A DNA stretch of 64,000 bases. Source: Haliotis rubra. Taxonomy: Eukaryota. The DNA lies in NCBI RefSeq assembly GCF_003918875.1, contig NW_025764892.1, forward strand, positions 2,108,001-2,172,000, read 5' to 3'. Positions 2,929 through 60,454 of the stretch are shown here, one piece after another. Position numbers and translations under genes: made by a program. Under the pieces are notes generated by a model, which was not told the origin of the DNA, made no database searches, and saw nothing but the letters and a program-made list of their open reading frames with translations. The stretch's first letter is position 1. Each line of letters starts with the position of its first letter.

Positions 2929-5900
2929 TCATACATTGTGTTTCGTGTTCTTCTGTGTCTGCTCTTGTTCCTCCTGGACATGCTTCCTCTTCCTGAGGTT
3001 CTCCTGATCCACGGACCCCATCTGCCCCTGTTCAGTCTGTGTCACATGTGTCCCAGTTTTGGGAATCTGTTCAAGCAAGTCATCACAGGACATCAACTGT
3101 TTGTCCTTAACTTTGTTGGATGAGGATGTTAAATGTCTGTTAACCAAATCTCCATATCTGTAACACGTTACCACTTCAATTATGGCCTCTTGTAAATTTG
3201 GACTGGTGTTGGTGTTGGTGTTGGAGGAACTGAGTGGATTTCCATCTGGTAGACACATCCTAGAAGAAAACAGACGTTATCACAATATTCAGTTTCAAGG
3301 AGGGGATAAAAATACACGATCACAAACCTATACACTGTCAAGTCCCCATTCTCGTTGAATGTACACAATTGCTATTATTTTAATATAAAAGTATAATTAA
3401 AAAAACAAACCAACTAAAAATGAATTCAAAGCACAATAACCTTTTAAGCAAGCTTAGTACATCCACTACCTGCAGAAGGCACTTTCTTGTCATAGTAATT
3501 TCTAATTCTGACAAGAAATCACTGTCAAGTGTTTTGTTCATGAACAGTTGAAAGATTCCCAGTTGTTGTCAGTGGAAATGTCACATGTCACTTATGTACA
3601 GCACGTTGTATATTTCAATCATATACACATCATATTGTGTCCCCCTCTTTATCACAATTACACAAAATGGACTTGACACACAATTCAAGATGAAATGATT
3701 CAGTCTGAGAAAGATACTACTACTATTGTAAATGTTAAAAATAATATGCTCAATGTAATGGACTAGTCATGTATTATGCACCAATATGTTTTAACTGACT
3801 AAAGACATATGCAGAAAAACATGGCTGAAGTGCTGAAAAAATTATTTCTTCAATAGTCAGGTGATCTATACAACCTTGTGGCTCTATTTTCAGTTTGCCA
3901 AAGTGAACTTCAGTATATTGCATTGACAGCAAAAGGTACTATCCAGGTCATAATTCTAAATGTTTTCAATATGTTGTTTGTATCATATATACATATCAAT
4001 TTTAAAATTGTAACACAATTTCTCAAGATTTGACGTGAGTGAGTAAGTTTTACAACACATAATCCAGCAATATCACTGCAGTGGGCTGAGAAATGGGCTT
4101 TACACATTGTACCCATGATAGGAAACGAATTCCTCATCTTCAGCATGACAAGCAAATGCCTCGACCACTGGACTACCCCAATATCCTTCAAGTGGCTTTA
4201 GCTGTGATATATCGTACCTGGAATTCCCAGGCTGATGTTGAGCCCCATTAGTGACAGTAGCTGCCGTCTGTAGTCCTCTGTGACACTCAACTGAACCCTC
4301 TGAAACAACACACTGTGGAATAGGAGGCATGAAGTCTCTTTCACAAAAAGACTAATGTTATTTGTAACAAACACTGAGCCAATTTGCTTATAAAACAGAG
4401 AGTTAAACTTAGTTTTAGGATCAAATGTTACAAAAGATCTTTCAGATTAATGATCTCTTTCTCACAAGAGATTTTTTAAGATAATGGACAGGTTTTCTGA
4501 CCAAGTTTTCTGGCCCATCATCTGATAGTTAATGGATGACAACCAGATCTCTTGAATAACCCTCAATAAAATGTCAGCATTCCGCATACTAATATCTTGC
4601 TATTTTTAGCAGTTGTTGATTGAAGAAGCTCCGTATTTACTTAGCAACTATGAAATCATTGATTTTTAAAGTTATCAAGCTGTAAGAACAGTTTACTGAA
4701 AATGATGTTTGCTTAATGAGACATGTACAGTAAGCATGCAAGCAGTAACAATAAATTCTGATGGAAACGTACAAGGAGGTCCAGGTTGAGGCAGACACCT
4801 GCAACGAAGTACGAACCATGATTGGTTATTGTGATTTTTTCCAGTAACTTTTTTTCACAGCCAAAATTGTGACTTTTTTCCTTAAACTTTCTTTCCGATC
4901 ACCGCTCAAAAGTTGCTTGATCTGGTTACAACATAAAGGCATGGTATGCATGTTGAGGAAATTACCTAATTTGATGCAGCAGTGACAGAAATTATACCTC
5001 ATACAATATGCTACTTTCAGCGAATTGATGTTCCCATGATTTTTTTCAGGTGAAAAATTGGCTCACCTTTGTATGTGTTTGTGGTGGTTCCACCCATAGA
5101 CCAGGATACGCTCACCTTTATTCCATTTTTGTGAGCTCCTGATACCTTCATTTTTTATATTGATTCATAAAAACATGCTCATGATAAAGTTGAAATTCTA
5201 GCTGAAATTTTTATGATAATGTAAAGGTTTTCTGTGGATGTTATTAAATTGTAAATCTGTGACCTCCGTAACACCTCACCTTGAGGGTGACCTGCATGAT
5301 CTGGGTAATCATCTATTGGTTCCTCCTTGACCTCAACCAGATCAAATTCCTTATCATGAGGCTCTGAAATAAGATCACTTTCCTCACAAGTGTCTGTTGT
5401 TTCTCCATCATATTCGTCCTCCTCATCATCATCGTCATCATCATCATCATCAGGATTGATGATAACCACAAAATCATCTACAGGTTCCTCTTTCACCTCG
5501 AGCTGCTTCTCCACAAGTACCTGATGCTTTCCAGAACCACTCTCCCTTCCAACATGGTGTAGATTCCCCTGAATAACACCACCCTTATCTGGATGGTCAT
5601 GTGGATTATCCCTGGTCAGTGAGGTTCTTTGGCCAGTCTGGACTGAAACAGGATTCTGAACTCTAGAACTGTCCAGGGAACTATTACTTAGCACCTGACA
5701 ACCAATCTCATTGTTCATGTGTTTCGGGGGTACTTCACCTAAAATGTACCCATTCGATACCTGGTTCATAAATGCAGGCTGTTGACTGATCTTCGGATCA
5801 GAGGTTGTAGTTTGTGGTTTGTTTACAAAGGGTGAGTGCTCGAGAACATTTTGTTGATAAGAGTTCACGCTTGGCTGTGAGCCGACAAGGACTGGTATTT

Positions 5901-8900
5901 GTTGCTGATGTTGCTGCTGTTGCTGATGTTGCTGACTGTTACCCGTTCCAGATTTCTGCCTGTCCCTGCCAAGTGTCACATAAACCTGGCCTGGTTCAAA
6001 GAAAAGTTCAAAAGATTTTACTGTCAACTGTATAGCACAGGTGGGTATATTTGAAATGTTAACTATAAACTGTATATTTATATACTTATCTTATCTAACT
6101 TTGTAAACATATTGGTAGCTGGGACACATTGATGGTTTGGTTATTCAAAAGGCATAATATTTTAATTAATAATGCATTGATTACTAATGTGATATACATG
6201 AAGTTAATCAATTTTCCAAAGTTGAAGATTGTGGTCATGTTAAGATTGAGTCTTTCTATTCTATGAATTTTCTTGGAAGATTTCAGGGTGAAGTGGGTGA
6301 ATGAGTACAACTGCTGAAATACCTAGGAACATGAATGAGACGAACTGGGATTTGAACCCATAATCATTGGTTTCTGGTGTGCCCAAGAAATGCAAATCTA
6401 CACAGCTGCTGGATCACACTAAAGAAAGATAAAGGGGGTAAAATCATGGAACCAGGTAATAAACCAAGACAATAGTCTCCTTGTGTTATGGTTTTTAGGC
6501 ACATACGAACATCTATTGTTGTCTCCATTATTGCATGAACAGTTGCAAAACATGTCACTAACTTTATCCAAAACACAAGCCGTCATTCAAGAATTTATAA
6601 TGTCTCTGTGATGCAACACCCCTATAAACTGAGTGATTACTTCCGTTAAAAAATGTATGAGCCAATGATAATATAACGATTATGGGAATAAAACACATAA
6701 AAACGGAAATGACTTGGTTATTTTTATTTGAACCTGGGCCTGAGATACTGAGAAGGTGACTTATACCATCATTTACTTACTTCATTTCTTTGCCACTATA
6801 CAAATTAATAGAGTGCTAGATAAATATTCTGAACTCATGGTAGGCTTACCGTTCTGATTGACAACTTTGATATTTCGGCTACTCAGGGATTCCCTTGAGC
6901 TGACTTCATCCTGACGGGAATCATAATTACTATGCAGATCCTCAACTCTGCTTATTATGCCTGTTTTCAGCTCTCTGAAACATTATTTTTACTAATGTTT
7001 TATGTTTCATCATGAAATGAGAATGACAGTACATTACAAAAAGCATTACTGATCTACATAAAAGTTCAAACCAATTCTTTTCACTCCTGCAAAATAATTA
7101 ATTTCCCAGCATGATACATGCAGATTTACCATGAAATATATGTTTTGTTTTTATGGGATATTTTTCATTGAAGAAATTGAAGTAATTTTCTAACTGCATC
7201 CAAAGAGTTATGTCTTTTCTGCAACATATCGATTCCACGACAACCACAAACCTGCGAACTGGTTAACTTGCTCAAGCCTGATAAACCACTTTCTCCCAGA
7301 AAATGCTCAGATATTATAAATACAATTGTTTTTTTATAAATCTTAAAGTCACTATGTCACACATTTTTGACAATATATTCACCTATATTATATATATTGG
7401 GGCATATGCACTCACTTTAGCTTCCTATTGATGCAATAAAAGACTTATTATCCCTTAAAACTTGCCTGAAATCGATAATTGAAATTTCGAGGCGAACAGC
7501 TTCCATACAGAGAACACTTGCCATATATAGAATGAAAACAATTGCTTCGTACATAAAAAACTGTTGCACACGGTGTTGTTGGTTTCCGATTGTTTTTACT
7601 TATTCAGTTACAGTGTTGGAGGCTACACACGCACACAAACAACCATTTCTGCCAGTAAAATATTCCTATATTCCAAGAACCTGTGTTACGATGAAAGATA
7701 TGAAACATTAGACTTCTATTGATAAGATTGATGTAGAAAATTGAAACTACAAATGCTTGTGTTAGTAATATTTCCATAGAACAGCAAGTGTAATATACGC
7801 TGAATACATCTCACATTTCTGTTATCATGTTTACAGATTTTATGACTGTGTTCAGAAGCTGGAATGATTAGTAGTGGTTGTAACAATAAGTTTGTTAACT
7901 TTGACATAAATATGTGAGAGGGCAACGATGTCTTGTTGCTTAAGAATTTTGTCAATTTTGAGTAATCTGTCACAAGTTCAGGGCTCCAAATCATTATATT
8001 AGAATCTCGTACATTTTCCCTCTCCGTATCCTTACCCTACACAATTGTACCAATACCAAACAAAAAGCAATCTACATTCATTTATTGAGTTTCAGTAGAT
8101 GTAAGAATAAAAACAAAACAAAAATGTATTTGTTTCATGAGAATATTTATTAAGTGACATATTATTGTGAAACAACATAACATGCAATCAACAAAACAAT
8201 TCAGTGTACCAGTAAGGCCATAACAATTATCTTTCTCATCAACATTACATCTAATCATAGAAATTGTTTCACAATCATAAACATTGCCTTAGAATGTTTT
8301 CCTGCAATCCTTGTCAAATTAGAATTGTTCATCAATTTCATCTACGACTGTGTCACATATCTGTTTTACATGTTTGGTAAAGAAACCCTAAAAATTCATG
8401 AAAATGATGTCAGGCAATGTTTATTTACAAAATATACACTAAAAATTATATAGGAAAAAGAAACCCACATTTTCATGGCCATAAATTTGTTTTTTACAGG
8501 AATCAAGTTCATGTTCTGGGGGACAATGAGGGAGGAAGGGGAGAGGTGGGCGTGGGAGAGGTAGGCGTGGGAGAGGTGGGCGTGGCTAGACTCGAAGAGA
8601 GACAGTGGGGCAGACATGACATCCAGCACTAGACTTTCAGGGACTAGTGCTAATTTCAAACTCTGCAAAACATTTCTTATATGGCAAATGAGATATTGTA
8701 ACAGAATAAATAAGTAAATCATTAGAGCCTATATTGAACAAGAACTTTATCTCTTGTATAAACTTGTCAGTGGCTGACAGCCATCGAGAAGAATGAAGAG
8801 GTTGAGGGAGAGATCGTGGCCGAGGGAGGGATGGTTTGCATGAGTATGCTGTACAGCACATCTCAGCCCTGCGAGAACAGAGATTGGACCGAATTTCAAT

Positions 8901-11900
8901 GAGGGTTTACATGAGCTTAAACAAAATATAACATTGCTACAGACAGATTTGCTTGCAGCAAGTGGATCATTTCAACATTGCTATGCAACAAGTATTTGTA
9001 CATTGATCTACATATTTATACAAGTATAGTTACACATAATATACTCATCCAAAAAAGTTAATGACCACCCCAATATTCAATATTTAAGTATTATATGGAT
9101 CATAATATGATCTATTTTAAAAATACTTTAATATTGGAAATTGGGGTGGTCCTTCACTTTTTTTTGTTGAGTATAAGATGTTGTAATAATTTGACCCAGC
9201 AATAGCACATGCTTGCCAGTGTCTTTTACAGAAAATATATGAGATAAACTCTAAGATTCAAAGTTTTAAAACTCAGAATACAAAAGGCTAAAATTCAATT
9301 TAGAAATTTGATTATAGTGAGCAACTAGGGAAAATTATTTATCAACATGAAATTTTTCGTGTGAAACCAAATTGGAAGTGAGAAATACAGGGAGAGGGAA
9401 TCCATCATCATATTGAAAGCATATATAATCCAAGACTGCAAATGAAATAAACACTTGTACCATAACCAAAATCTTTTGAGACAATACGCTTTGTTCAGTC
9501 ACCATATATGCTGTGAGTTTGAGGTGTAATTTGAAAATGACGTCACTTAGTGACCAATTGTCACCATGAATGAGCCAATATAGATAAAACATCTCTTGAG
9601 TTTCTATCAATGAAGATAACCTATTTATATCTGTGCCGAAATATTTAGCAAATTAATATTCATACATACCCATTAAAGTGATCTGTCGATATACTTGACA
9701 CCTCAGACTTTCCTACCTCCATGTCATCAGGTCTCTTTCTCATTGGTGCTGATTGGGAATCGGATGCATTCATTCTCACGAATGCATCATTCCTGTCAAA
9801 AAAGGATATGATAAATTACCTTGAATTTACCTTGACTAATTTGTTCTTCATAATGACATTAAAAATCACAAACAAAAAGATTACAAAGCTTGACTGACTG
9901 AGCTATAACATGTTAGAATATAACTGGGAGTCACATCTGACAGTACTTTGGCAACAAAAGCAAAATAATATATATCTAATTACATAAAAGTAATAAAATA
10001 TAGGATAAGATTTCTTAAAATGCCAAGTATCAGATTCCCCAAAAATGTTACAACATGATGATGCTTTACGATGATAGAGGTAAAAATAACTGGGCCTCTA
10101 TTGGGCCTATATTAAGAACAGCACTATCCCGTTTCAAATGTAGTTCTCATGATCTTCTAACAGAAAAAAAGTAGATATTTAGGGATATCATGGGAAAACC
10201 AATTGTATCAATATTGTACTTATCAGGAGGTAGAATATGAATACCATTTCTTGCTTCTCTGTCCGTTGTATGTGAATATCAGAAAAGAATACATGAACTT
10301 AAGAATATACAACTTACAAGCGAGTCTGGCAATTCTGCGCAGCTGCAATAGCATACTTCCGTATCGAAGGTAAACATCGTCTGCTATCACATTTATGCTG
10401 GAAATCGGGACATTTCTACAAGGGACTGGCTTTTAATCACTAAAGGTAAGTAAATAACAGTAACTGACAGATAAATTTACAGTTTTATGAAAATTCTTTT
10501 TCTTCAGACTCTTAAACCTTTTTCTTCATTATTCATAATTGGATTTAATATGAAACACTCTTCCTTACATTGATGAAGTGATTTTTGAAAATAATTTGGC
10601 CCTAATACGCTTCCATACTTCGGATCTCCAGCTGGATGTTATGCACATCAGTTGCTGCGCAGAATTACCGGACAGCATACAATGTCGTCAGAACGCCGGT
10701 AAGGTCAACCGTATGGCATAATGCAACGTTAGAATCTCATAGCCGTCAATAAAATTTATATTTCTAGGTAAATATGATGCATACTAACATGTTTAGTCAC
10801 GTAAACCACAAAAAATAAGAGACGTTAGTTGCTGTGTTGCGATTGATGTGCTTAGGTGCGCGGAATTACCGGACGGCATTGTATCTATCTGAACCCCCGA
10901 ATAGAATCCCAATATGAAAGTCACAAAATATCTTGCAATGTATATATACCATGCAATGAATATCAGATCCTCTGCATTACAGATGTGATATTATTTACGA
11001 TATATTCATTTCTATTGCACCCTGTGATATGGCCTTTTCAATACTGTAAATAAAGATTAATGGAACAATATTATTAAAAAAAAATGCTTTATTCAACAGA
11101 AATAATTTGCCTCAAAGGTGGAATATTGTAAACTTGATTGGGGAGTACTGCACTTTACCGGGCGCACTTTTTCTGATTACTTAGCGCTGCTGGGGTTCCC
11201 TAGGAAATCATGCTCACCTGTCTAAGAGCAACAAGGCAAACTGCTCGTCTGTCATGGTGCCCCTCTGCTCCTTCCAACGATCCATGGCCGTTTTAATGTA
11301 CACCATCTGTTGCCGACGCCCTTTCTGCGCAGCATTTCTTCTTTCTCTCATATCATTTGGCGAGAATAAAACAGGCCTGCCTCTACCTTGTTTGTAAACA
11401 TTCGCCGCCATTTTGTCTAGGACAAAGGAGTTACAGGATATTTGTAAAGAGCGCTCCAAGGGACGTAACTCTATGGGGGTCGCTTGAAATAATGTTCAGC
11501 CGATATAGAACGCGAGTAGATTCACTCGGAACTTTTTAATTTAATATTGTAATATAAATACGTAATTTGTTTAGGAATAAACTATATGGTAGCTTCCCTG
11601 AGGGCTGATAGTTAGTATTATTGAGAGAAATGCATTATATATTTATTTTAGAGAAGCGTGGTGTGATGCACTTTAAGAAGGTGATCAGCAAATTCAACGT
11701 TGTTATCTTTTCGAATAGCTTTCAGCGCCGACCATTGTTCAAAGCAATTTCCAAGATGGATTCGAGTTTTTTTCTCGTCGCTTAGGTTGTCTGCATGTTT
11801 CATTGCTCGATTGTGCTCATCGGAAACCCTTCTTCCTTTTTTCTTTTAGGGGAGCGTTAACGAATTAACTACATAAAAGATAAAGGATAAAAGACGCAAA

Positions 11901-13260
11901 GTCTACATAGCCCATAATTAGTCATTTCAGGTGAGATAATCTCCCTGAGACAAACACCGGCAAAGTTCGGAAAAGACATACAATAAGGGATAAAACTAAA
12001 ATTAACTTAGGTGATGATTTTGTTTGTTCTTCACGTCCACTGTAACTTACCTTTTATAAGAACATTTTACACCTTAAGTATCTATCATTTTTCAGTTAGA
12101 CTATGCATTCTGTTTATTCTTGAAAAAGTGGAAAATAGCCTTGAAGTTAGTTCCCCTCTTCTATATATTAGCTTCATGGATTCATCTTTGAAAATACACT
12201 GAAATACAGCGGTCTGTTTTCTGAATGTATACACAAAATATGAAAAGTTGATGCCATGCAGAGCTACAGATAACTTTTTTGGGTCATTGAGTTATGTACC
12301 CGCTTGTCTTCATCTCAATTGGGTATCCTAATTTTCCTTTGAGTAACCAAACAAATTGTACTCACCTTACTCAAAATCAATTGGGTATTTTGCCTTTTTC
12401 CATTAATTGTTAAAATATAATAAAGTTTAAATGTTAGTGTTTGTTATTTATATTTGAATTGTAATATGAGAAACGATATGAAAGACTGCTAGTTGAGTGT
12501 TCATGTGCCGAAATAGAACCTCTAAATATACCTGTTCCTTTATCTATCCACTGGTACGCAAGCTAAGATTTGACAGTTTTCTGTGTACGCATGTACAATC
12601 AAATTTATTGAGCATTTACAAAAATACAAGCGTACTTGAACGCAACAGACGTAATAGGAATTGAGTTTTCACATAAATATTTGCGTAATTTACGCAGATA
12701 CGCAGCTTATCTATACCTCTGGCCATGTCTACAATGGTATACATAGATTTGGCGTTTTAATGCAATCTTTAGCTGATCATGACTATGATGTTAAAATGAT
12801 AAATCAAAGCTCAGACAGTCTCCAAACTTGAGGTAGTCTGCCCAGTTGATAATACATCTTCATACAGATAATTCATGGTGTATGATTTGTTCGATCCCGA
12901 CAGCAGTTTGGAACATAACAAATCCAACAAGTGTTTTGACATGTTCCCCGAATGTGTTCTTCTTGTCATTTTACGAGCGCTTTAGTTAACATGACCGCTC
13001 CTTGTGTTGAGTACACAGGAACGTGTTTTCAAACATGTAACAAACACAATGTCAAAAACGCACCTGCACGATTTGCAGTAGTGTTCGTGTACTTTGAGTA
13101 AATGGTCTGCCAGTTCGACGTTGTTATCTTTTCGGAGACTTTTCAGTTCTGCCCATTGCGGGAAGCAAGTTCCAAGATGAATTCTCGTCATTTCTCTTCG
13201 CTTGTTTTCAGCCCGTTTCCGTTCCCGCTTGTGTTCTTCCGACACCCTTCTCCTGCCCAT
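2929..13260 (-). CDS. Uncharacterised nuclear protein with a ZNF692/ZNF653-like N-terminal module, polyQ and acidic VKEEP region; two alternative first exons
   Basis: Exons, all GT-AG and phase-consistent: 13064-13260 (exon 1a) or 11218-11411 (exon 1b), then 9670-9792, 6850-6974, 5280-5990, 4218-4299, 2929-3259. The joined ORF is 1569 or 1566 nt (522 or 521 aa) and stays open across every junction. Confidence 0.75.
4036..4180 (-). mobile_element. tRNA-derived SINE family 1 (diverged)
   Basis: Matches the family consensus GGGGTAGCCTAGTGGTTAAAGCGTTCGCTCGTCACGCCGAAGACCCGGGTTCGATTCCCCACATGGGTAC...GCTGGAATATTGCT...(ACTC)n. Confidence 0.7.
5280..5990 (-). CDS. Large internal exon: polyQ, two VKEEP (SUMO consensus) motifs, poly-Asp tract
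   Basis: ORF 5179..6027, acceptor TTTGAACCAG|G, donor CAAG|GTGAGG, phase 1-1. Confidence 0.8.
8539..8585. repeat. 15-bp tandem repeat (GGGAGAGGTRGGCGT)x3
   Basis: Direct reading of the sequence. Confidence 0.8.
9042..9173. mobile_element. Tc1/mariner-type MITE
   Basis: Imperfect TIRs TACTCATCCAAAAAAGTTAATGACCACCCC / GGGGTGGTCCTTCACTTTTTTTTGTTGAGTA, flanked by TA. Confidence 0.7.
10110..10320 (+). mobile_element. Decayed 3' fragment of a CR1/L2-like LINE ORF2
   Basis: Translates to RTALSRFKCSSHDLL...ENQLYQYCTYQEVEYEYHFLLLCPLYVNIRKEY, the typical C-terminal Cys/His motif. Confidence 0.65.
11218..11411 (-). CDS. Candidate first exon 1b (MAANVYKQGRGRP...VYIKTAMDRWKEQRGTMTDEQFALLLLDR)
   Basis: ATG in CAAAATGGCGGC context (Kozak/YY1-like), donor AG|GTGAG in phase 2, AT-hook-like GRGRP, same domain pattern as exon 1a. 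Confidence 0.7.
12259..12721 (+). mobile_element. MITE with CAG...CTG termini (hAT-like), copy 1
   Basis: TIR CAGAGCTACAGATAA / TTATCTATACCTCTG, flanked by GCCATG on both sides. A second copy is at 14538-14977. Confidence 0.65.
13064..13260 (-). CDS. Candidate first exon 1a (MGRRRVSEEHKRERKRAENKRREMTRIHLGTCFPQWAELK...LADHLL)
   Basis: ATG at 13260, donor AG|GTGCG in phase 2. The peptide matches the pattern R-rich / RI.LG....W..LK....LA.hLL that I recall from ZNF692/ZNF653 N-termini. Confidence 0.65.
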
Positions 13261-13762
13261 CGTTACGTAGTTAAGTATCCGTAACCTAATTGATGAGCAG
13301 TCACGCTCGGAAAGAAAACACAGGACAAATTCCGGACAAAAGACAATTACTCCGCCAGTTAATTAGACGCCGAAGGGAAGTAACCGTGTAATGACAAATG
13401 TTTGTGTCACCTCCGGAAAATAGGTGTATAACTGGGAGTTCGAACCCAACCTTTGCTATTTTTTGGGCCATAACGATCTTCACATCTCGGGAGCATTGAT
13501 TAGTTTTATTTATGTAAAATTAAACTCGCAATACTTTCGAAAATACATAAAAGTAACAAATTTTGCGCATTACACATTAGAACTTTACAATACAAGCAAT
13601 AATTCTGTTCGGAGGAATTCTAATTATGAAATGGCCTGCATAAGTCTTGCATTCCACAAGGTTAAATTAAAACAACATGGTTTATGTAATAACCTGTAGC
13701 CGGAAAATATGAACATTCTCTTCGGAAAGCTGCAAAATAATGACAGAAAAGGGAGGTGTGCC

Positions 13763-45329: not shown

Positions 45330-48300
45330 TCACGTTGACTTGCCAGCACAGCAGTCCTTTGTAGGCACAGTCTGAGACACAGAAGGACACTCAGGGTCAT
45401 TGTCCTGGGAAGCACATTTGTCTAAAATGTCAGATGCATCCAGCTCTGCAGATGTCCCCTCATTGAAGACAGTGTCAAGGTCACTTTCAGGCACAGAGTT
45501 CATGGTTGTGGAGCTTGGGGTGGGCTCAGTGAGAGAGAAAGAACTTTGTGATGGGGTGATGGTGGCTGCTGGGGCTGGAACGCCCTCGGGAGACGGAGTC
45601 TGGTATTTCTTTCCTCTTCTCTTTCCCAGCACTTTCAAATAGTTTGCTGGCAACAGCCCTGTATTGCTTCCATCCACAGATCCAAGTAGCCACCCTCGTA
45701 CCTTGGGCTGCATCTCTGCAAAACACAAACACAACAAGGTTGCATGTGAGGCCTGCAAAGATGATCATATGTGCCGACTCAGAGTATTCAAATGCTATAA
45801 TTAGTTGAACTAAACTAATATATCTGTTAATTACTGACAGTAAAAATCATAATAAAAGTCACAAGAAACTTTGAAGTTTGTGTGAAGTTGTCTGACCAAA
45901 ACTTCATTACCTGATCCTATGTGTATCCAAGAAAACAGCAATAATGGTGAAAGCACAACTAAAATTCAATACTTAGCCCACAACATTATGACATGATTTT
46001 ATCAGTTTTATGCAAACATGATTAGCAGGCCAATTAAGCATTACAAACAAGCAGACACTGCAACAGTTGTACAAGTTTAAAATCCCCATTTTCAACTTAT
46101 TTTCCCCATTATCAATTCATATTTCGCCATGTTGAAGGCATTCCCACCATAATGCCTTTTATTCATCAACAAACCAAGCTATCAGTGCTGACAGGAAATG
46201 TCCATCATCTTACTGAATCACTTGGGCTTTATTCACTAAGAAAAAAAGGGTTCTTCTCATTTTGTTTTACACTCAAATTGTCTGGGTTTTTCAATAATCT
46301 AACCCTTTCTGGTATTAATCATACACTATGTCAACAGGCCATAAACCATACTCTTTAGCAACATTTCTAGAAGAGTTGGGAGAAATTACTGAAAACATTG
46401 TTTGAACAATGAAATTTAGAATGGTTAATAAGAAGCATTATGAACTGTCTGAGGCATTAGAAAATGCTGAAGAAAAAACTGGTTACAGATTAAAATGTTT
46501 ATGTTAACCTAACTATGCCGATGGATGCACACAAACCTTTAGGAGCAATGTTGATCATCTGTCCGGCAGTGAAGGATAGTTCATTGTTGTTGCTTGCACG
46601 GAAGTCATACTCAGCTCGGGCAACAAAGTGATCCTCGTCCCCGTTTGCCCAGCTGTTGGTCTCATCTGGATATAACAGAGTATCAATGGTGGACAGTTAT
46701 ATAATAAGTATGGGTAATGATCTATAGTACTTCTGTACATGGCTATTGATTTCATATATAGAAATGAAACCATTTCAAAGAAAATGTTTGTCTAAGTGTT
46801 AAGTAATTTCATGATTTTAATCAATAATTTTTCCAAGGATACTGACAAAATCTTCAAAGGTAAGGCAGTTTCTGTTCCCAATTTCATTTGGCTGATTACA
46901 TATTGTTGCCAAAGCTTTTGTCACTATTTTACCCTTGTCAGCATGGTAAGATTATATTATTACTGATACATCTACTTGTACTGTTTACAGTAAACAGTGA
47001 TGCATTGTCAGTATTACTGACTGTGATGTCAAACAATTTTCACTCTCTATTCCCATTATTCATGTATAAAAGTTACGTTTAATGATTTCATAAACCAGTA
47101 ATCACCTTCAAACCATGTATATCACAACACAACCATGACAATGTTAACAGCAATGCACTGACAAGTATGATGAAGCATAATGAAATATACGCACCAATGC
47201 CAGTTGAGAAGGACCTGAGGATTTTCCAGATAAGCCAGGGACCTCCAAGGATGATGCCAAAGAACATGAAAATGGGCCAGGCACTGTTCTTGGGTGTGGG
47301 TTCCCCAGGGGCCAGTTTGGCTGCAGCCTGGGAGACAGCATCATTCCAGGCCTGGGCTGCATGACCTGGTGGTCGCAATCGCAGCAGTTCCAAGAAGCGC
47401 CTGTAGATGTATTTAAGGGTCCGAATGAAAGCTAAAGCAGATATCACAGAAACAAGCTGACTCCTCAGTCTGGACATGTTGTCAGCCACACCGATCACAG
47501 CCCGGAATGAATTATACACTGCCTGGAAGGTCGAGTCCATCATCATTCCTACAGAAGTCACTGCACTCACAACATTCTCAATAGCCTGGAAGGCTGGCCG
47601 AGAATTCTCCTCTGCTTGGCGGGCAAATGTTCCCATTGAATCCTGGTTTCCACCGAATCTATTGTATCCTCCTCCATAACCACCATACCCATAGCTGCCA
47701 TAGGAGCTATAAGGGCTGTTATACATACCACCACCATAGGAGGAATAAGGGCTGTAACCTAGTGAACTTCCCATACCATACCCTCCTGCATATGGACGGG
47801 CTCCAAATGTATTCTGAGAAGGACGAGTTGGAACTGGTGGTGGTGCACTGGTTGTGCCCTGAACACAGCATGGTGCAGGTGTACCCCTAAAAACAACAAA
47901 GTTATAAGTGAGTGAGTCATATAAGTCACATTGCAGTATTTCAGCCATATTGTGACTATGTCAAGTTATATATTGATAATAATCATAGGTAAATCATAAA
48001 AACCTGTCAACAAAGGACAGTAAAACAATTAGTTTATCACAGATAAACATTCAAAAACCAGTAAGTAAATTTAAAACATTTTAACTATACAAGACGATAC
48101 AATATAAAAACAGGCTATAGATTGCCAACAACTAAAGGTAGATCACAACAAAGTTACAAAATCAAAAAGATATGCTTATTCATGAAAGTAGTATCATTCT
48201 GAAACATTTACATGTTCAGGGATAAATCTCTGCCTTTTGCTAGGCAAACATCTGATCTGATTGACCTGCATGGTGGCACATAAGTCTGTGCAGGCATTAA

Positions 48301-59242: not shown

Positions 59243-60454
59243 TCAATGATCTATGTAATAATGCAATGCAAGGTCATCTTTCACAGTCTCTGGTAAAGGA
59301 AGAGTCTTAATAGCTGTTTTGATGTCCCTACCAAACATACTCCTAACTTTGAATCTACACAAGTGCTGAAGCGTCCTAGCATTTCGTCCAATATGCCTGC
59401 AGTCCTTCACCACTGCGTACCAGATTGGATGTTCCTTATCCCCTGGATCATCCTCATACACTATATCTTCTTTGCCTGGGTCAGCCCCTGCCTGTATTAG
59501 GAGTTCCACCAGTTCAGCATTTCTTTGAAAAAATGCCATATAGAAAGCAGTCCTGCCTAAATTGTCCAGCACGTCCAACTTAACATTAAGGTGTCCAATG
59601 AGATACTCGGCTATCTTATTATGATCTCTGTCCACAGCATGATGCAAAGCTGTGCGCCCTTCCTTGTCCTGAATATCAGCACAGGCTCCACTAGAGCCTA
59701 ACAGTTCAACAGTGTTCCTGTAGCTCCTCTTGCTGGCTAGTATAAGAGGGGTGTCACCTTGACTGTTGATGTGGTTTATGTCTGCCCCAGCATCGATCAG
59801 AACACGAGCGGTGTTCACACATCTTACAGACAGACAAAGAGGAGTGTTTCCACAGTCTCCAGTGTCATTAACATTTGCACCATTTTCCATGAGGTATTCA
59901 CACATTAATGAATTTATCATAAATGCTGCAAAGAGTAGGGGTGTCATGGTGTCGTGAAATGTGCTGTTTACATCAGCACCTGCATCTACCAGCAGTCTCA
60001 ACATGTCCATATTTTCTGTCAATATTGCCCAGAACATGGGTGTTGAGTCACCAGAGTCTCTTGAATCAACAGAAACACCATAATCTTCAATCAAAGATTT
60101 CACCACTGCTATCTGGTTTGCAGCACATGCAAGATGAACTGGGTACTCATTCTTCCCAGTAAGGTTTCTGCTTGTTTCCTCTGGGCTGAACCCATGAGCG
60201 ATAAGGGCCTTCATGATGTCAAGTTGTCCAGTACGGGCGGCTGTGGCCACAGGAGAATATCTCAGTTGTGAATAATAGCGATCTTGGACAAGTGATGTGT
60301 ATGTTTCCGGTGTGATATGGTTGTGATCTAAGTACTCAATGACCGTTTTGGCATCACCACTGGAGATCAGGCTGTACAGCTGCTCAAAAGACTTCACTGT
60401 TGCAATCGTCTTTGGTTCTGGCGGTGTCTCTGGTTGCTCTTGGTGTTCAGCCAT
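59243..60454 (-). CDS. Ankyrin repeat and SOCS box protein (ASB-like), single coding exon, 403 aa
   Basis: About 8 ankyrin repeats (TPLILA, TALHHA, GADVN) and a C-terminal SOCS box ARTLQHLCRFKVR..IKTLPLPETVKDDL. A splice acceptor about 26 nt upstream of the ATG implies a 5' UTR intron. Confidence 0.9.
   Translation of the reverse strand: MAEHQEQPETPPEPKTIATVKSFEQLYSLISSGDAKTVIEYLDHNHITPETYTSLVQDRYYSQLRYSPVATAARTGQLDIMKALIAHGFSPEETSRNLTGKNEYPVHLACAANQIAVVKSLIEDYGVSVDSRDSGDSTPMFWAILTENMDMLRLLVDAGADVNSTFHDTMTPLLFAAFMINSLMCEYLMENGANVNDTGDCGNTPLCLSVRCVNTARVLIDAGADINHINSQGDTPLILASKRSYRNTVELLGSSGACADIQDKEGRTALHHAVDRDHNKIAEYLIGHLNVKLDVLDNLGRTAFYMAFFQRNAELVELLIQAGADPGKEDIVYEDDPGDKEHPIWYAVVKDCRHIGRNARTLQHLCRFKVRSMFGRDIKTAIKTLPLPETVKDDLALHYYIDH

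Follow-up and report, generated by a model that had tools for sequence, protein, structure and literature searches.

Paralogous alternative first exons of an abalone gene encode a conserved head module shared with teleost fishes

We analyzed 64,000 nucleotides (nt) of the genome of the abalone Haliotis rubra (NCBI RefSeq assembly GCF_003918875.1, contig NW_025764892.1, positions 2,108,001 to 2,172,000), a stretch hereafter called the window. On its minus strand lies a gene that we consider, with a probability of roughly 0.7, to be a single-copy Haliotis gene whose 5' end carries a tandem array of duplicated first coding exons. Two of these exons, named 1a and 1b, are live in the window, and each supplies its own N-terminal head to a common downstream body. 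All coordinates are window positions unless another locus is named, and the positions of the individual parts are collected in Table 1.

Both first exons end in phase-2 donors (AG/GTGCGT for exon 1a and AG/GTGAGC for exon 1b), and both have A at position -3 and G at position +4 around the start codon. In the 1b peptide, a GRGRP sequence is followed by a basic stretch and then by the conserved module described below. Exon 2 is preceded by ttttttgacag and followed by GTATGT, and exons 3 to 6 were placed by using H. asinina proteins as a guide. Products that include exon 2 have 522 amino acids (aa) when they begin with exon 1a and 521 aa when they begin with exon 1b. Without exon 2, the lengths are 481 and 480 aa, and the routes from exon 1a to exon 2 and from exon 1a to exon 3 are both in frame. 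A model that reads past exon 4 to a stop at position 5179 (417 to 418 aa) was dropped; the six-exon spliced model fits the 521- to 522-aa product. An earlier note on this DNA had given the coordinates and lengths of the first exons, their phase-2 donors and an open reading frame of 521 to 522 aa over five further exons, all of which we re-derived from the sequence.

The same note had described the two head peptides as divergent versions of a common pattern, forming one paralogous pair, and both shuffling and profile comparison uphold this description. The 1a and 1b peptides align without gaps over 44 residues, with 27% identity. Their Smith-Waterman score is 57, compared with 23.2 ± 4.4 for shuffled sequences, and none of 5000 shuffles reached 57. 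When only the nonbasic halves of the peptides were compared, 27 of 5000 shuffles reached the observed score. An hhalign comparison of a 1a family (five sequences) with a 1b/1c family (four sequences, including a further copy, 1c, introduced below) gave a probability of 83.7% and an expectation value (E) of 8e-6. Judged by these sequence comparisons, the 1a and 1b heads are paralogous.

Evidence for transcription comes from assembled contigs of three public runs (X1-X3), which were labelled RNA by guess. We treat them as transcriptomes because they contain exons and repeats and leave unique intron uncovered, whereas a DNA run (X5) covers everything at about 50-fold. The joint between exons 1b and 2 is seen directly in a 314-nt contig (X3 record 17), which reads from 11379 to 11217, then from 9791 to 9670, and then continues for 29 more letters; the junction is ambiguous by one G. 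Another contig (X2 record 13) covers 11396-11217 and has 55 further letters. For exon 1a, one contig (X2 record 16) spans 13364-13176, which gives the exon a leader of at least 104 nt, and another (X1 record 8) spans 13225-13064 and ends within one letter of the predicted donor. Exons 1a and 1b are thus both transcribed.

The alternative-head design is already annotated in RefSeq for sister species. An exhaustive HMMER search with the 1a peptide found H. asinina XP_067679511.1 (isoform X2, 477 aa), whose cluster mate is XP_067679510.1 (isoform X1, 514 aa). The window 1a peptide is 97% identical to the start of the former, and the window 1b peptide is 91% identical to the start of the latter. 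In H. asinina isoform X1, the 1b peptide is followed by the exon 2 peptide; in isoform X2, the 1a peptide is joined straight to the exon 3 peptide. H. rufescens isoform X1 begins with a 1a-type exon and isoform X2 with a different one, 1a', and the H. cracherodii RefSeq protein begins with a 1a-type exon. Both H. rufescens first exons and the H. cracherodii first exon join exon 3, and 1a-type heads skip exon 2 and join exon 3 in every RefSeq model of the three sister species. RefSeq gives H. rufescens XP_046326623.2 / XP_048255519.1 the name "eisosome protein SEG2-like", which most likely reflects only an acidic low-complexity run.

The earlier note had proposed that both first exons splice to position 9792, the start of exon 2. 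This proposal holds for exon 1b, whose joint with exon 2 is attested by the X3 contig; with exon 3 and the rest of the body, the product has 521 aa. It does not hold for exon 1a in the three sister species, and in the window genome exon 1a, judged by its relatives' gene models, is most likely spliced straight to exon 3, for a product of 481 aa; a joint from exon 1a to 9792 is possible there but unsupported. Among the forms seen, exon 2 travels only with exon 1b. Since exon 1a skips exon 2 in H. asinina, the constant body probably starts at exon 3.

A search upstream and in orthologous loci, which the note had suggested as a check, brought to light two further first exons, 1a' and 1c, so that the pair the note had described does feed one body but belongs to an array that held at least four members. 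In the window, 1a' is a dead copy of exon 1a that lies between 1a and 1b. It shares 74% DNA identity with exon 1a over 106 nt, and it has a frameshifted N-terminal part, a terminal stop and no usable donor. Its orthologue is intact in the two American species, at 11150-11347 of the H. rufescens locus (L006), where it serves as the head of isoform X2, and at 11027-11224 of the H. cracherodii locus (L005). In H. asinina, it has decayed so that its ends alone survive.

The fourth first exon, 1c, is a broken relic in the window, split by an insertion. The intact H. cracherodii 1c peptide matches 15092-15024 in a tblastn search (E 0.004), and next to the relic the DNA is collinear at 15614-15254. 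Intact copies of 1c lie about 4 kb upstream of exon 1a in H. cracherodii (L005 5790-6020) and H. rufescens (L006 5772-6002), and are unannotated in both. Each copy starts with its own ATG, encodes RGRP and the module, and has a phase-2 donor of consensus form (TT/GTAAGT); both combine a 1b-like RGRP head with a 1a-like H..C..C tail. Nothing in the American loci corresponds to window 11663-7122, and both exon 1b and exon 2 have therefore been lost there. The four Haliotis loci are otherwise collinear, and an upstream RNase H gene is common to the three sister-species loci. The ancestral array consisted of 1c, 1a and 1a', then 1b with exon 2, and different lineages kept different subsets. Since 1a' and 1c are dead here but intact in the American species, which in turn are without 1b and exon 2, the array evolves through the birth and death of its exons.

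The heads are the best-conserved part of the gene. Between the window and H. asinina, the nonsynonymous rate (dN), synonymous rate (dS) and their ratio (omega) are 0.013, 0.33 and 0.04 for exon 1a, and 0.054, 0.17 and 0.31 for exon 1b, versus 0.098, 0.19 and 0.52 for the body (445 codons). Similarly, exons 1c, 1a and 1a' differ between H. rufescens and H. cracherodii at 1.5 to 2.2% of bases, compared with 6.3% for adjoining noncoding DNA.

Table 1. Parts of the gene and of its first-exon array in the window
Feature	Position	Strand	Size	Basis or remark
1c relic	~15254-15020	minus		Broken fourth first exon, split by insertion; tblastn and collinearity
Exon 1a, leader and coding sequence	13064..13364	minus		RNA-like contigs and sequence
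Exon 1a, coding sequence	13260-13064	minus	197 nt, 65 aa + 2 nt	Own ATG
1a' (dead copy of 1a)	11836-11651	minus		Lies between 1a and 1b; tblastn E 4e-22
High-copy repeat	11435..11644			24 nt upstream of 1b ATG; outside coding unit
Exon 1b, coding sequence	11411-11218	minus	194 nt, 64 aa + 2 nt	Own ATG
Exon 2	9792-9670	minus	123 nt, 41-aa linker	In RNA-like contig, joined to 1b
Exon 3	6974-6850	minus		GT-AG sites and frame
Exon 4	5990-5280	minus		Glutamine-rich, acidic; GT-AG sites and frame
Exon 5	4299-4218	minus		tblastn with H. asinina isoforms and GT-AG sites
Exon 6, with stop codon	3259-2929	minus		tblastn with H. asinina isoforms and frame

To recognize the head in other genes, we describe it by the order of its motifs: a basic stretch, [T/S]R[V/I]x[I/L]G, ..F..W..L[K/R], a turn with D, and E[V/L]A..LL[D/K]. 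Exons 1a, 1a' and 1c fit this order in full. HMMER and a profile word search found relatives of the head among unnamed teleost proteins of 50 to 120 aa, with the core RTRVNIG.AF.RW.ELKE..GL.SDAEVALFLLD; in cyprinids, this fish family is multi-copy. A word search with the 65-aa 1a peptide yielded no candidates. By hhalign, the fish profile matches 1a with 95.4% probability (E 1.9e-8) and 1b/1c with 96.4% (E 1.2e-9). In the combined alignment of fish and abalone sequences, W, A and LL are invariant, and G and D almost so. The exon runs 2 nt past LLD to its GT in Pampus, Leuciscus, Epinephelus, Coryphaenoides and abalone 1b, and exons 1a, 1a' and 1c end nine codons beyond the LLD site in the same phase. 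That the intron site is common to fish and abalone argues for an old host exon.

Pfam searches gave no match for the heads, the large exon or the last exon, nor for 26 family members. Taken together, these sequence profiles place the head in a conserved family that is present in abalone and teleosts and that has no Pfam entry or assigned function. Three HMMER matches with six or seven "stretches" were considered as possible module arrays and were rejected: they are TPR/CHAT repeat proteins and a tandem repeat that matches only TRMNLGNC. In the Leuciscus locus, no recognizable domain lies downstream of the module.

AlphaFold, given an alignment of 26 sequences, predicts three helices (residues 3-25, 29-42 and 47-64) with a predicted local distance difference test score (pLDDT) of 79. 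The head is thus modelled as a module of about 60 aa in which a short [T/S]R[V/I]x[I/L]G segment lies between a basic helix and a hairpin of two helices that contains the invariant Trp and LL. An RGRP core, which resembles an AT-hook, occurs in the 1b and 1c heads. The 1a, 1a' and 1c heads end in H-x-H-x-x-C-x-x-C or H-x-x-x-C-x-C (window 13064-13090; L005 ~5990-6017), and in several fish relatives a Cys follows soon after LLD. To judge by its residues, the H/C tail of 1a, 1a' and 1c could be a small metal-binding knuckle. A comparison of the model with the PDB by VIA-align gave Z scores of at most 5.2, from a mixture of unrelated helical proteins.

The earlier note had assigned the heads to the type of N-terminus found in ZNF692 and ZNF653. 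On the vertebrate side, our profile comparison covered the fish family only, and the likeness in motif to the human N-termini is a presumed one. A shape search of the ESM Atlas with the alignment-based 1a model returned ZNF653 (three) and a ZN692 fragment as the best four rows, with template modelling (TM) scores by query of 0.46 to 0.52 and root-mean-square deviations of 1.0 to 2.0 Å over 36 to 38 residues. We regard these rows as independent support, because ZNF692 and ZNF653 had been named beforehand. It is therefore likely that the head, as modelled, matches the start of ZNF653/ZNF692 in predicted shape. The assignment extends to the module and not to the gene as a whole. No reading frame of the 64-kb window contains a C2H2 pattern, and the RefSeq orthologues in three Haliotis species end without zinc fingers. 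Because it has no zinc fingers, the abalone gene is not an orthologue of ZNF692/ZNF653: the module is common to them, but the gene is not.

A teleost gene also connects the module with zinc fingers. In Coryphaenoides rupestris (locus L007 9938-11264), two module exons lie 1 kb apart, each with an ATG and a phase-2 donor, and each continues in frame into one and the same following exon. This gene's last exon encodes an acidic run, six C2H2 fingers and GRP motifs. The Coryphaenoides gene therefore shows the module on a ZNF653/692-like body in a vertebrate, and shows that the tandem first-exon design recurs. A PDB search with the fish zinc-finger exon returned only generic C2H2 matches, which do not identify the gene as ZNF653 or ZNF692. 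In the deposited Coryphaenoides model, both module exons are strung together in a single protein; this may be a mistake of annotation that conceals alternative heads.

The body that receives the heads (exons 3 to 6) has about 415 aa and is glutamine-rich and strongly acidic. Exon 4 encodes two VKEEP motifs and the sequence FVVIINPDDDD, all kept in the four Haliotis species. VKEEP fits the psi-K-x-E SUMO consensus, and FVVIINPDDDD resembles a SUMO-interaction motif. The body looks disordered. Being rich in glutamine, acidic and equipped with conserved SUMO-type motifs, it looks like a nuclear regulatory scaffold.

In human ZNF692, residues 1-97 contain an arginine-rich nucleolar localization signal that is needed for binding of NPM1 (PMC10956046). 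A literature search found nothing on the ZNF653 N-terminus or on ribbon-helix-helix (RHH) domains in these proteins. We take the abalone head to be a targeting unit because the ZNF692 N-terminus acts as nucleolar signal and NPM1 contact. By this analogy, the choice of first exon would put different targeting heads on one regulatory body. The heads might direct the body to a nuclear or nucleolar location, or might bind nucleic acid or a partner, and a swapped head would change the target. We infer a separate promoter for each first exon and, again from the ZNF692 analogy, binding partners and targets for the heads.

Several observations weigh against the interpretation of the heads as a swapped, functional module. 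Exon 1b keeps W, D, A and LLD of the module, but has Lys for the otherwise invariant Gly and lacks the TR dipeptide. The exon to which 1a is joined is not seen in the X1-X3 contigs, and the exon depth in these contigs is only 2 to 3, which gives no expression level. A PDB sequence search with the family profile found no match, and neither did a Foldseek search of the PDB with the head model. The Atlas match extends over a helical hairpin of only 36 residues, a shape that is common, and with a single-sequence AlphaFold model the Atlas returned no ZNF653/ZN692 rows. The function of the head rests on analogy. Moreover, no contig extends upstream of 11396 on exon 1b, and an upstream leader shared with other forms is therefore possible.

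This last point leads to an alternative that we consider rather unlikely, in which the gene has one promoter, exon 1b is an internal exon reached from a noncoding upstream leader such as that of 1a, and the choice of head is made by splicing. It would explain the missing upstream contigs, the AG acceptor 6 nt before the 1b ATG, and the presence of a high-copy repeat, instead of unique promoter-like DNA, immediately upstream. This repeat, common to H. asinina, has a depth of tens of thousands in the DNA run versus about 50 for the exons, and its position next to the 1b ATG bears on where the 1b transcript starts. However, contigs break at repeats, so the absence of a leader proves nothing; if coding 1a were spliced to the acceptor ahead of the 1b ATG, the frame would reach a stop after 11 codons, and RefSeq gives the H. 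asinina 1b form its own ATG. That only one head matters, the other being a decaying duplicate or transcriptional noise, is very unlikely. Two of the four copies are dead in the window genome, both live exons have very low depth, and the American species do without 1b. Yet ATG, frame and donor are kept for both exons in two species, the dN of each head is below that of the body, RefSeq models both heads, and RNA-like contigs of two samples show the 1b joint, as contigs of two samples show exon 1a.

We see scarcely any likelihood that the first exons arose by capture of the 5' ends of DNA transposons of the TTAA type (Kolobok-like), although repeats crowd the introns and the fish family is multi-copy in cyprinids. 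Exons 1a, 1a' and 1b are single-copy at 90% likeness, with a depth of about 50 in the DNA run, and four Haliotis genomes are collinear across them. Terminal inverted repeats are absent from their flanks, neither the window region nor the examined fish loci have a transposase, and an intron site and phase common to the fish genes fit an old host exon. Less improbable, though still rather unlikely, is a reading in which the head is a plain basic nuclear or nucleolar localization peptide, whose two versions are interchangeable and lead to the same target. Both heads are rich in R and K, and the arginine-rich motif of ZNF692 is both nucleolar signal and NPM1 contact. But the most-conserved positions (G, W, A, LL and D) belong to the helical hairpin and are not the basic ones, and such a peptide would have no need for a folded part of 40 residues or for paralogues at 27% identity under selection.

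A bolder proposal is that the head is an unrecognized bilaterian domain of RHH type that would bind DNA and dimerize, and that is swapped via tandem first exons across a ZNF653/ZNF692-related family; we regard this as unlikely. Head swapping would then be an ancient practice of that family, since abalone and the teleost six-finger gene have the two-exon design in common. The residues of the [V/I]x[I/L]G segment alternate in the manner of a strand, and the middle one, which would be exposed, varies: 1a and 1a' have H there, 1b has Y, 1c has F, and fish have N, H, T or Y. NikR (1q5v), MazE6 (7wj0) and Rv0298 (8u12) align to model residues 25-65, with Z scores of 3.4 to 3.5, below the level that the tool considers meaningful. 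In the monomer model, residues 26-28 alone are nonhelical in the putative RHH strand. No RHH family was among the Pfam matches of the 26 members (E up to 10), no PDB sequence matched, and a tblastn search of plasmids with the fish module gave no match.

Other features of the window stand apart from the array. Three intron stretches of the gene (10291-11195, 11435-11644 and 12259-12721) are very high-copy repeats, with depths of tens to hundreds of thousands where the reference DNA run is about 50-fold, and these repeat families are also found in transcript contigs from other loci. Positions 1-2000 are GC-rich (55.7% vs about 37% elsewhere) and contain long, overlapping plus-strand open reading frames of up to 337 aa, which have no Pfam match at E 0.01; this edge of the window thus has the look of a foreign or repeat element. 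Two neighbouring genes lie on the minus strand: the one at 45330-47948 has the N-terminal region of peroxin-13 (E 2.8e-42) and a weak SH3 exon, and the one at 59243-60454 encodes an ankyrin-repeat SOCS-box protein.

Alternative first exons are common, and the isoforms were already in RefSeq, so the gene design itself is no surprise. What is new is that the heads exchanged in this way are paralogous copies of a single conserved module, for which there is neither a Pfam entry nor an assigned function. Through this module, mollusc genes are linked to a family of fish proteins that lack names and, as far as predicted shape can tell, to the N-termini of human ZNF653 and ZNF692, which are themselves unexplained. 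Also new is the turnover of heads in the array, with gains and losses from one abalone species to another. Different heads on one body would be a natural experiment on the role of the ZNF692/ZNF653 N-terminus beyond nucleolar targeting, and the head is a defined, small and testable domain.

The abalone gene can be compared with four known systems. Like the N-terminus of ZNF653 (Zip67) and ZNF692, it has a basic stretch, then a short helical hairpin and then an acidic disordered middle, as far as predictions allow; unlike those genes, it has no zinc finger. The head as modelled resembles RHH domains of the NikR and CopG/Arc/MetJ type in size and in layout, with the [V/I]x[I/L]G segment and its alternating hydrophobic residues leading into helix A, and a G-x-x-[S/N/T]-D turn leading into helix B, but it has no Pfam RHH or PDB sequence match. 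The teleost family, which includes Pampus KAM7368748.1 and Epinephelus LOC144464117 and has the consensus RVNIG..F.RW.EL...GL.SDAEVALFLLD, has the same module by profile, the same exon end after LLD plus 2 nt, and tandem duplicated first exons in Coryphaenoides. It differs in that the module makes up nearly the whole annotated protein (95 to 116 aa) in several fish, and its members are unnamed and unstudied. The clustered protocadherins and UGT1A resemble the abalone gene in their tandem paralogous first exons with own ATGs, same-phase donors and shared downstream exons, and in the gain and loss of copies between species. However, the abalone array is tiny, with two live exons of four; its variable part is a 65-aa head rather than an ectodomain or a catalytic domain; and one of its first exons, 1b, brings a private extra exon, exon 2.

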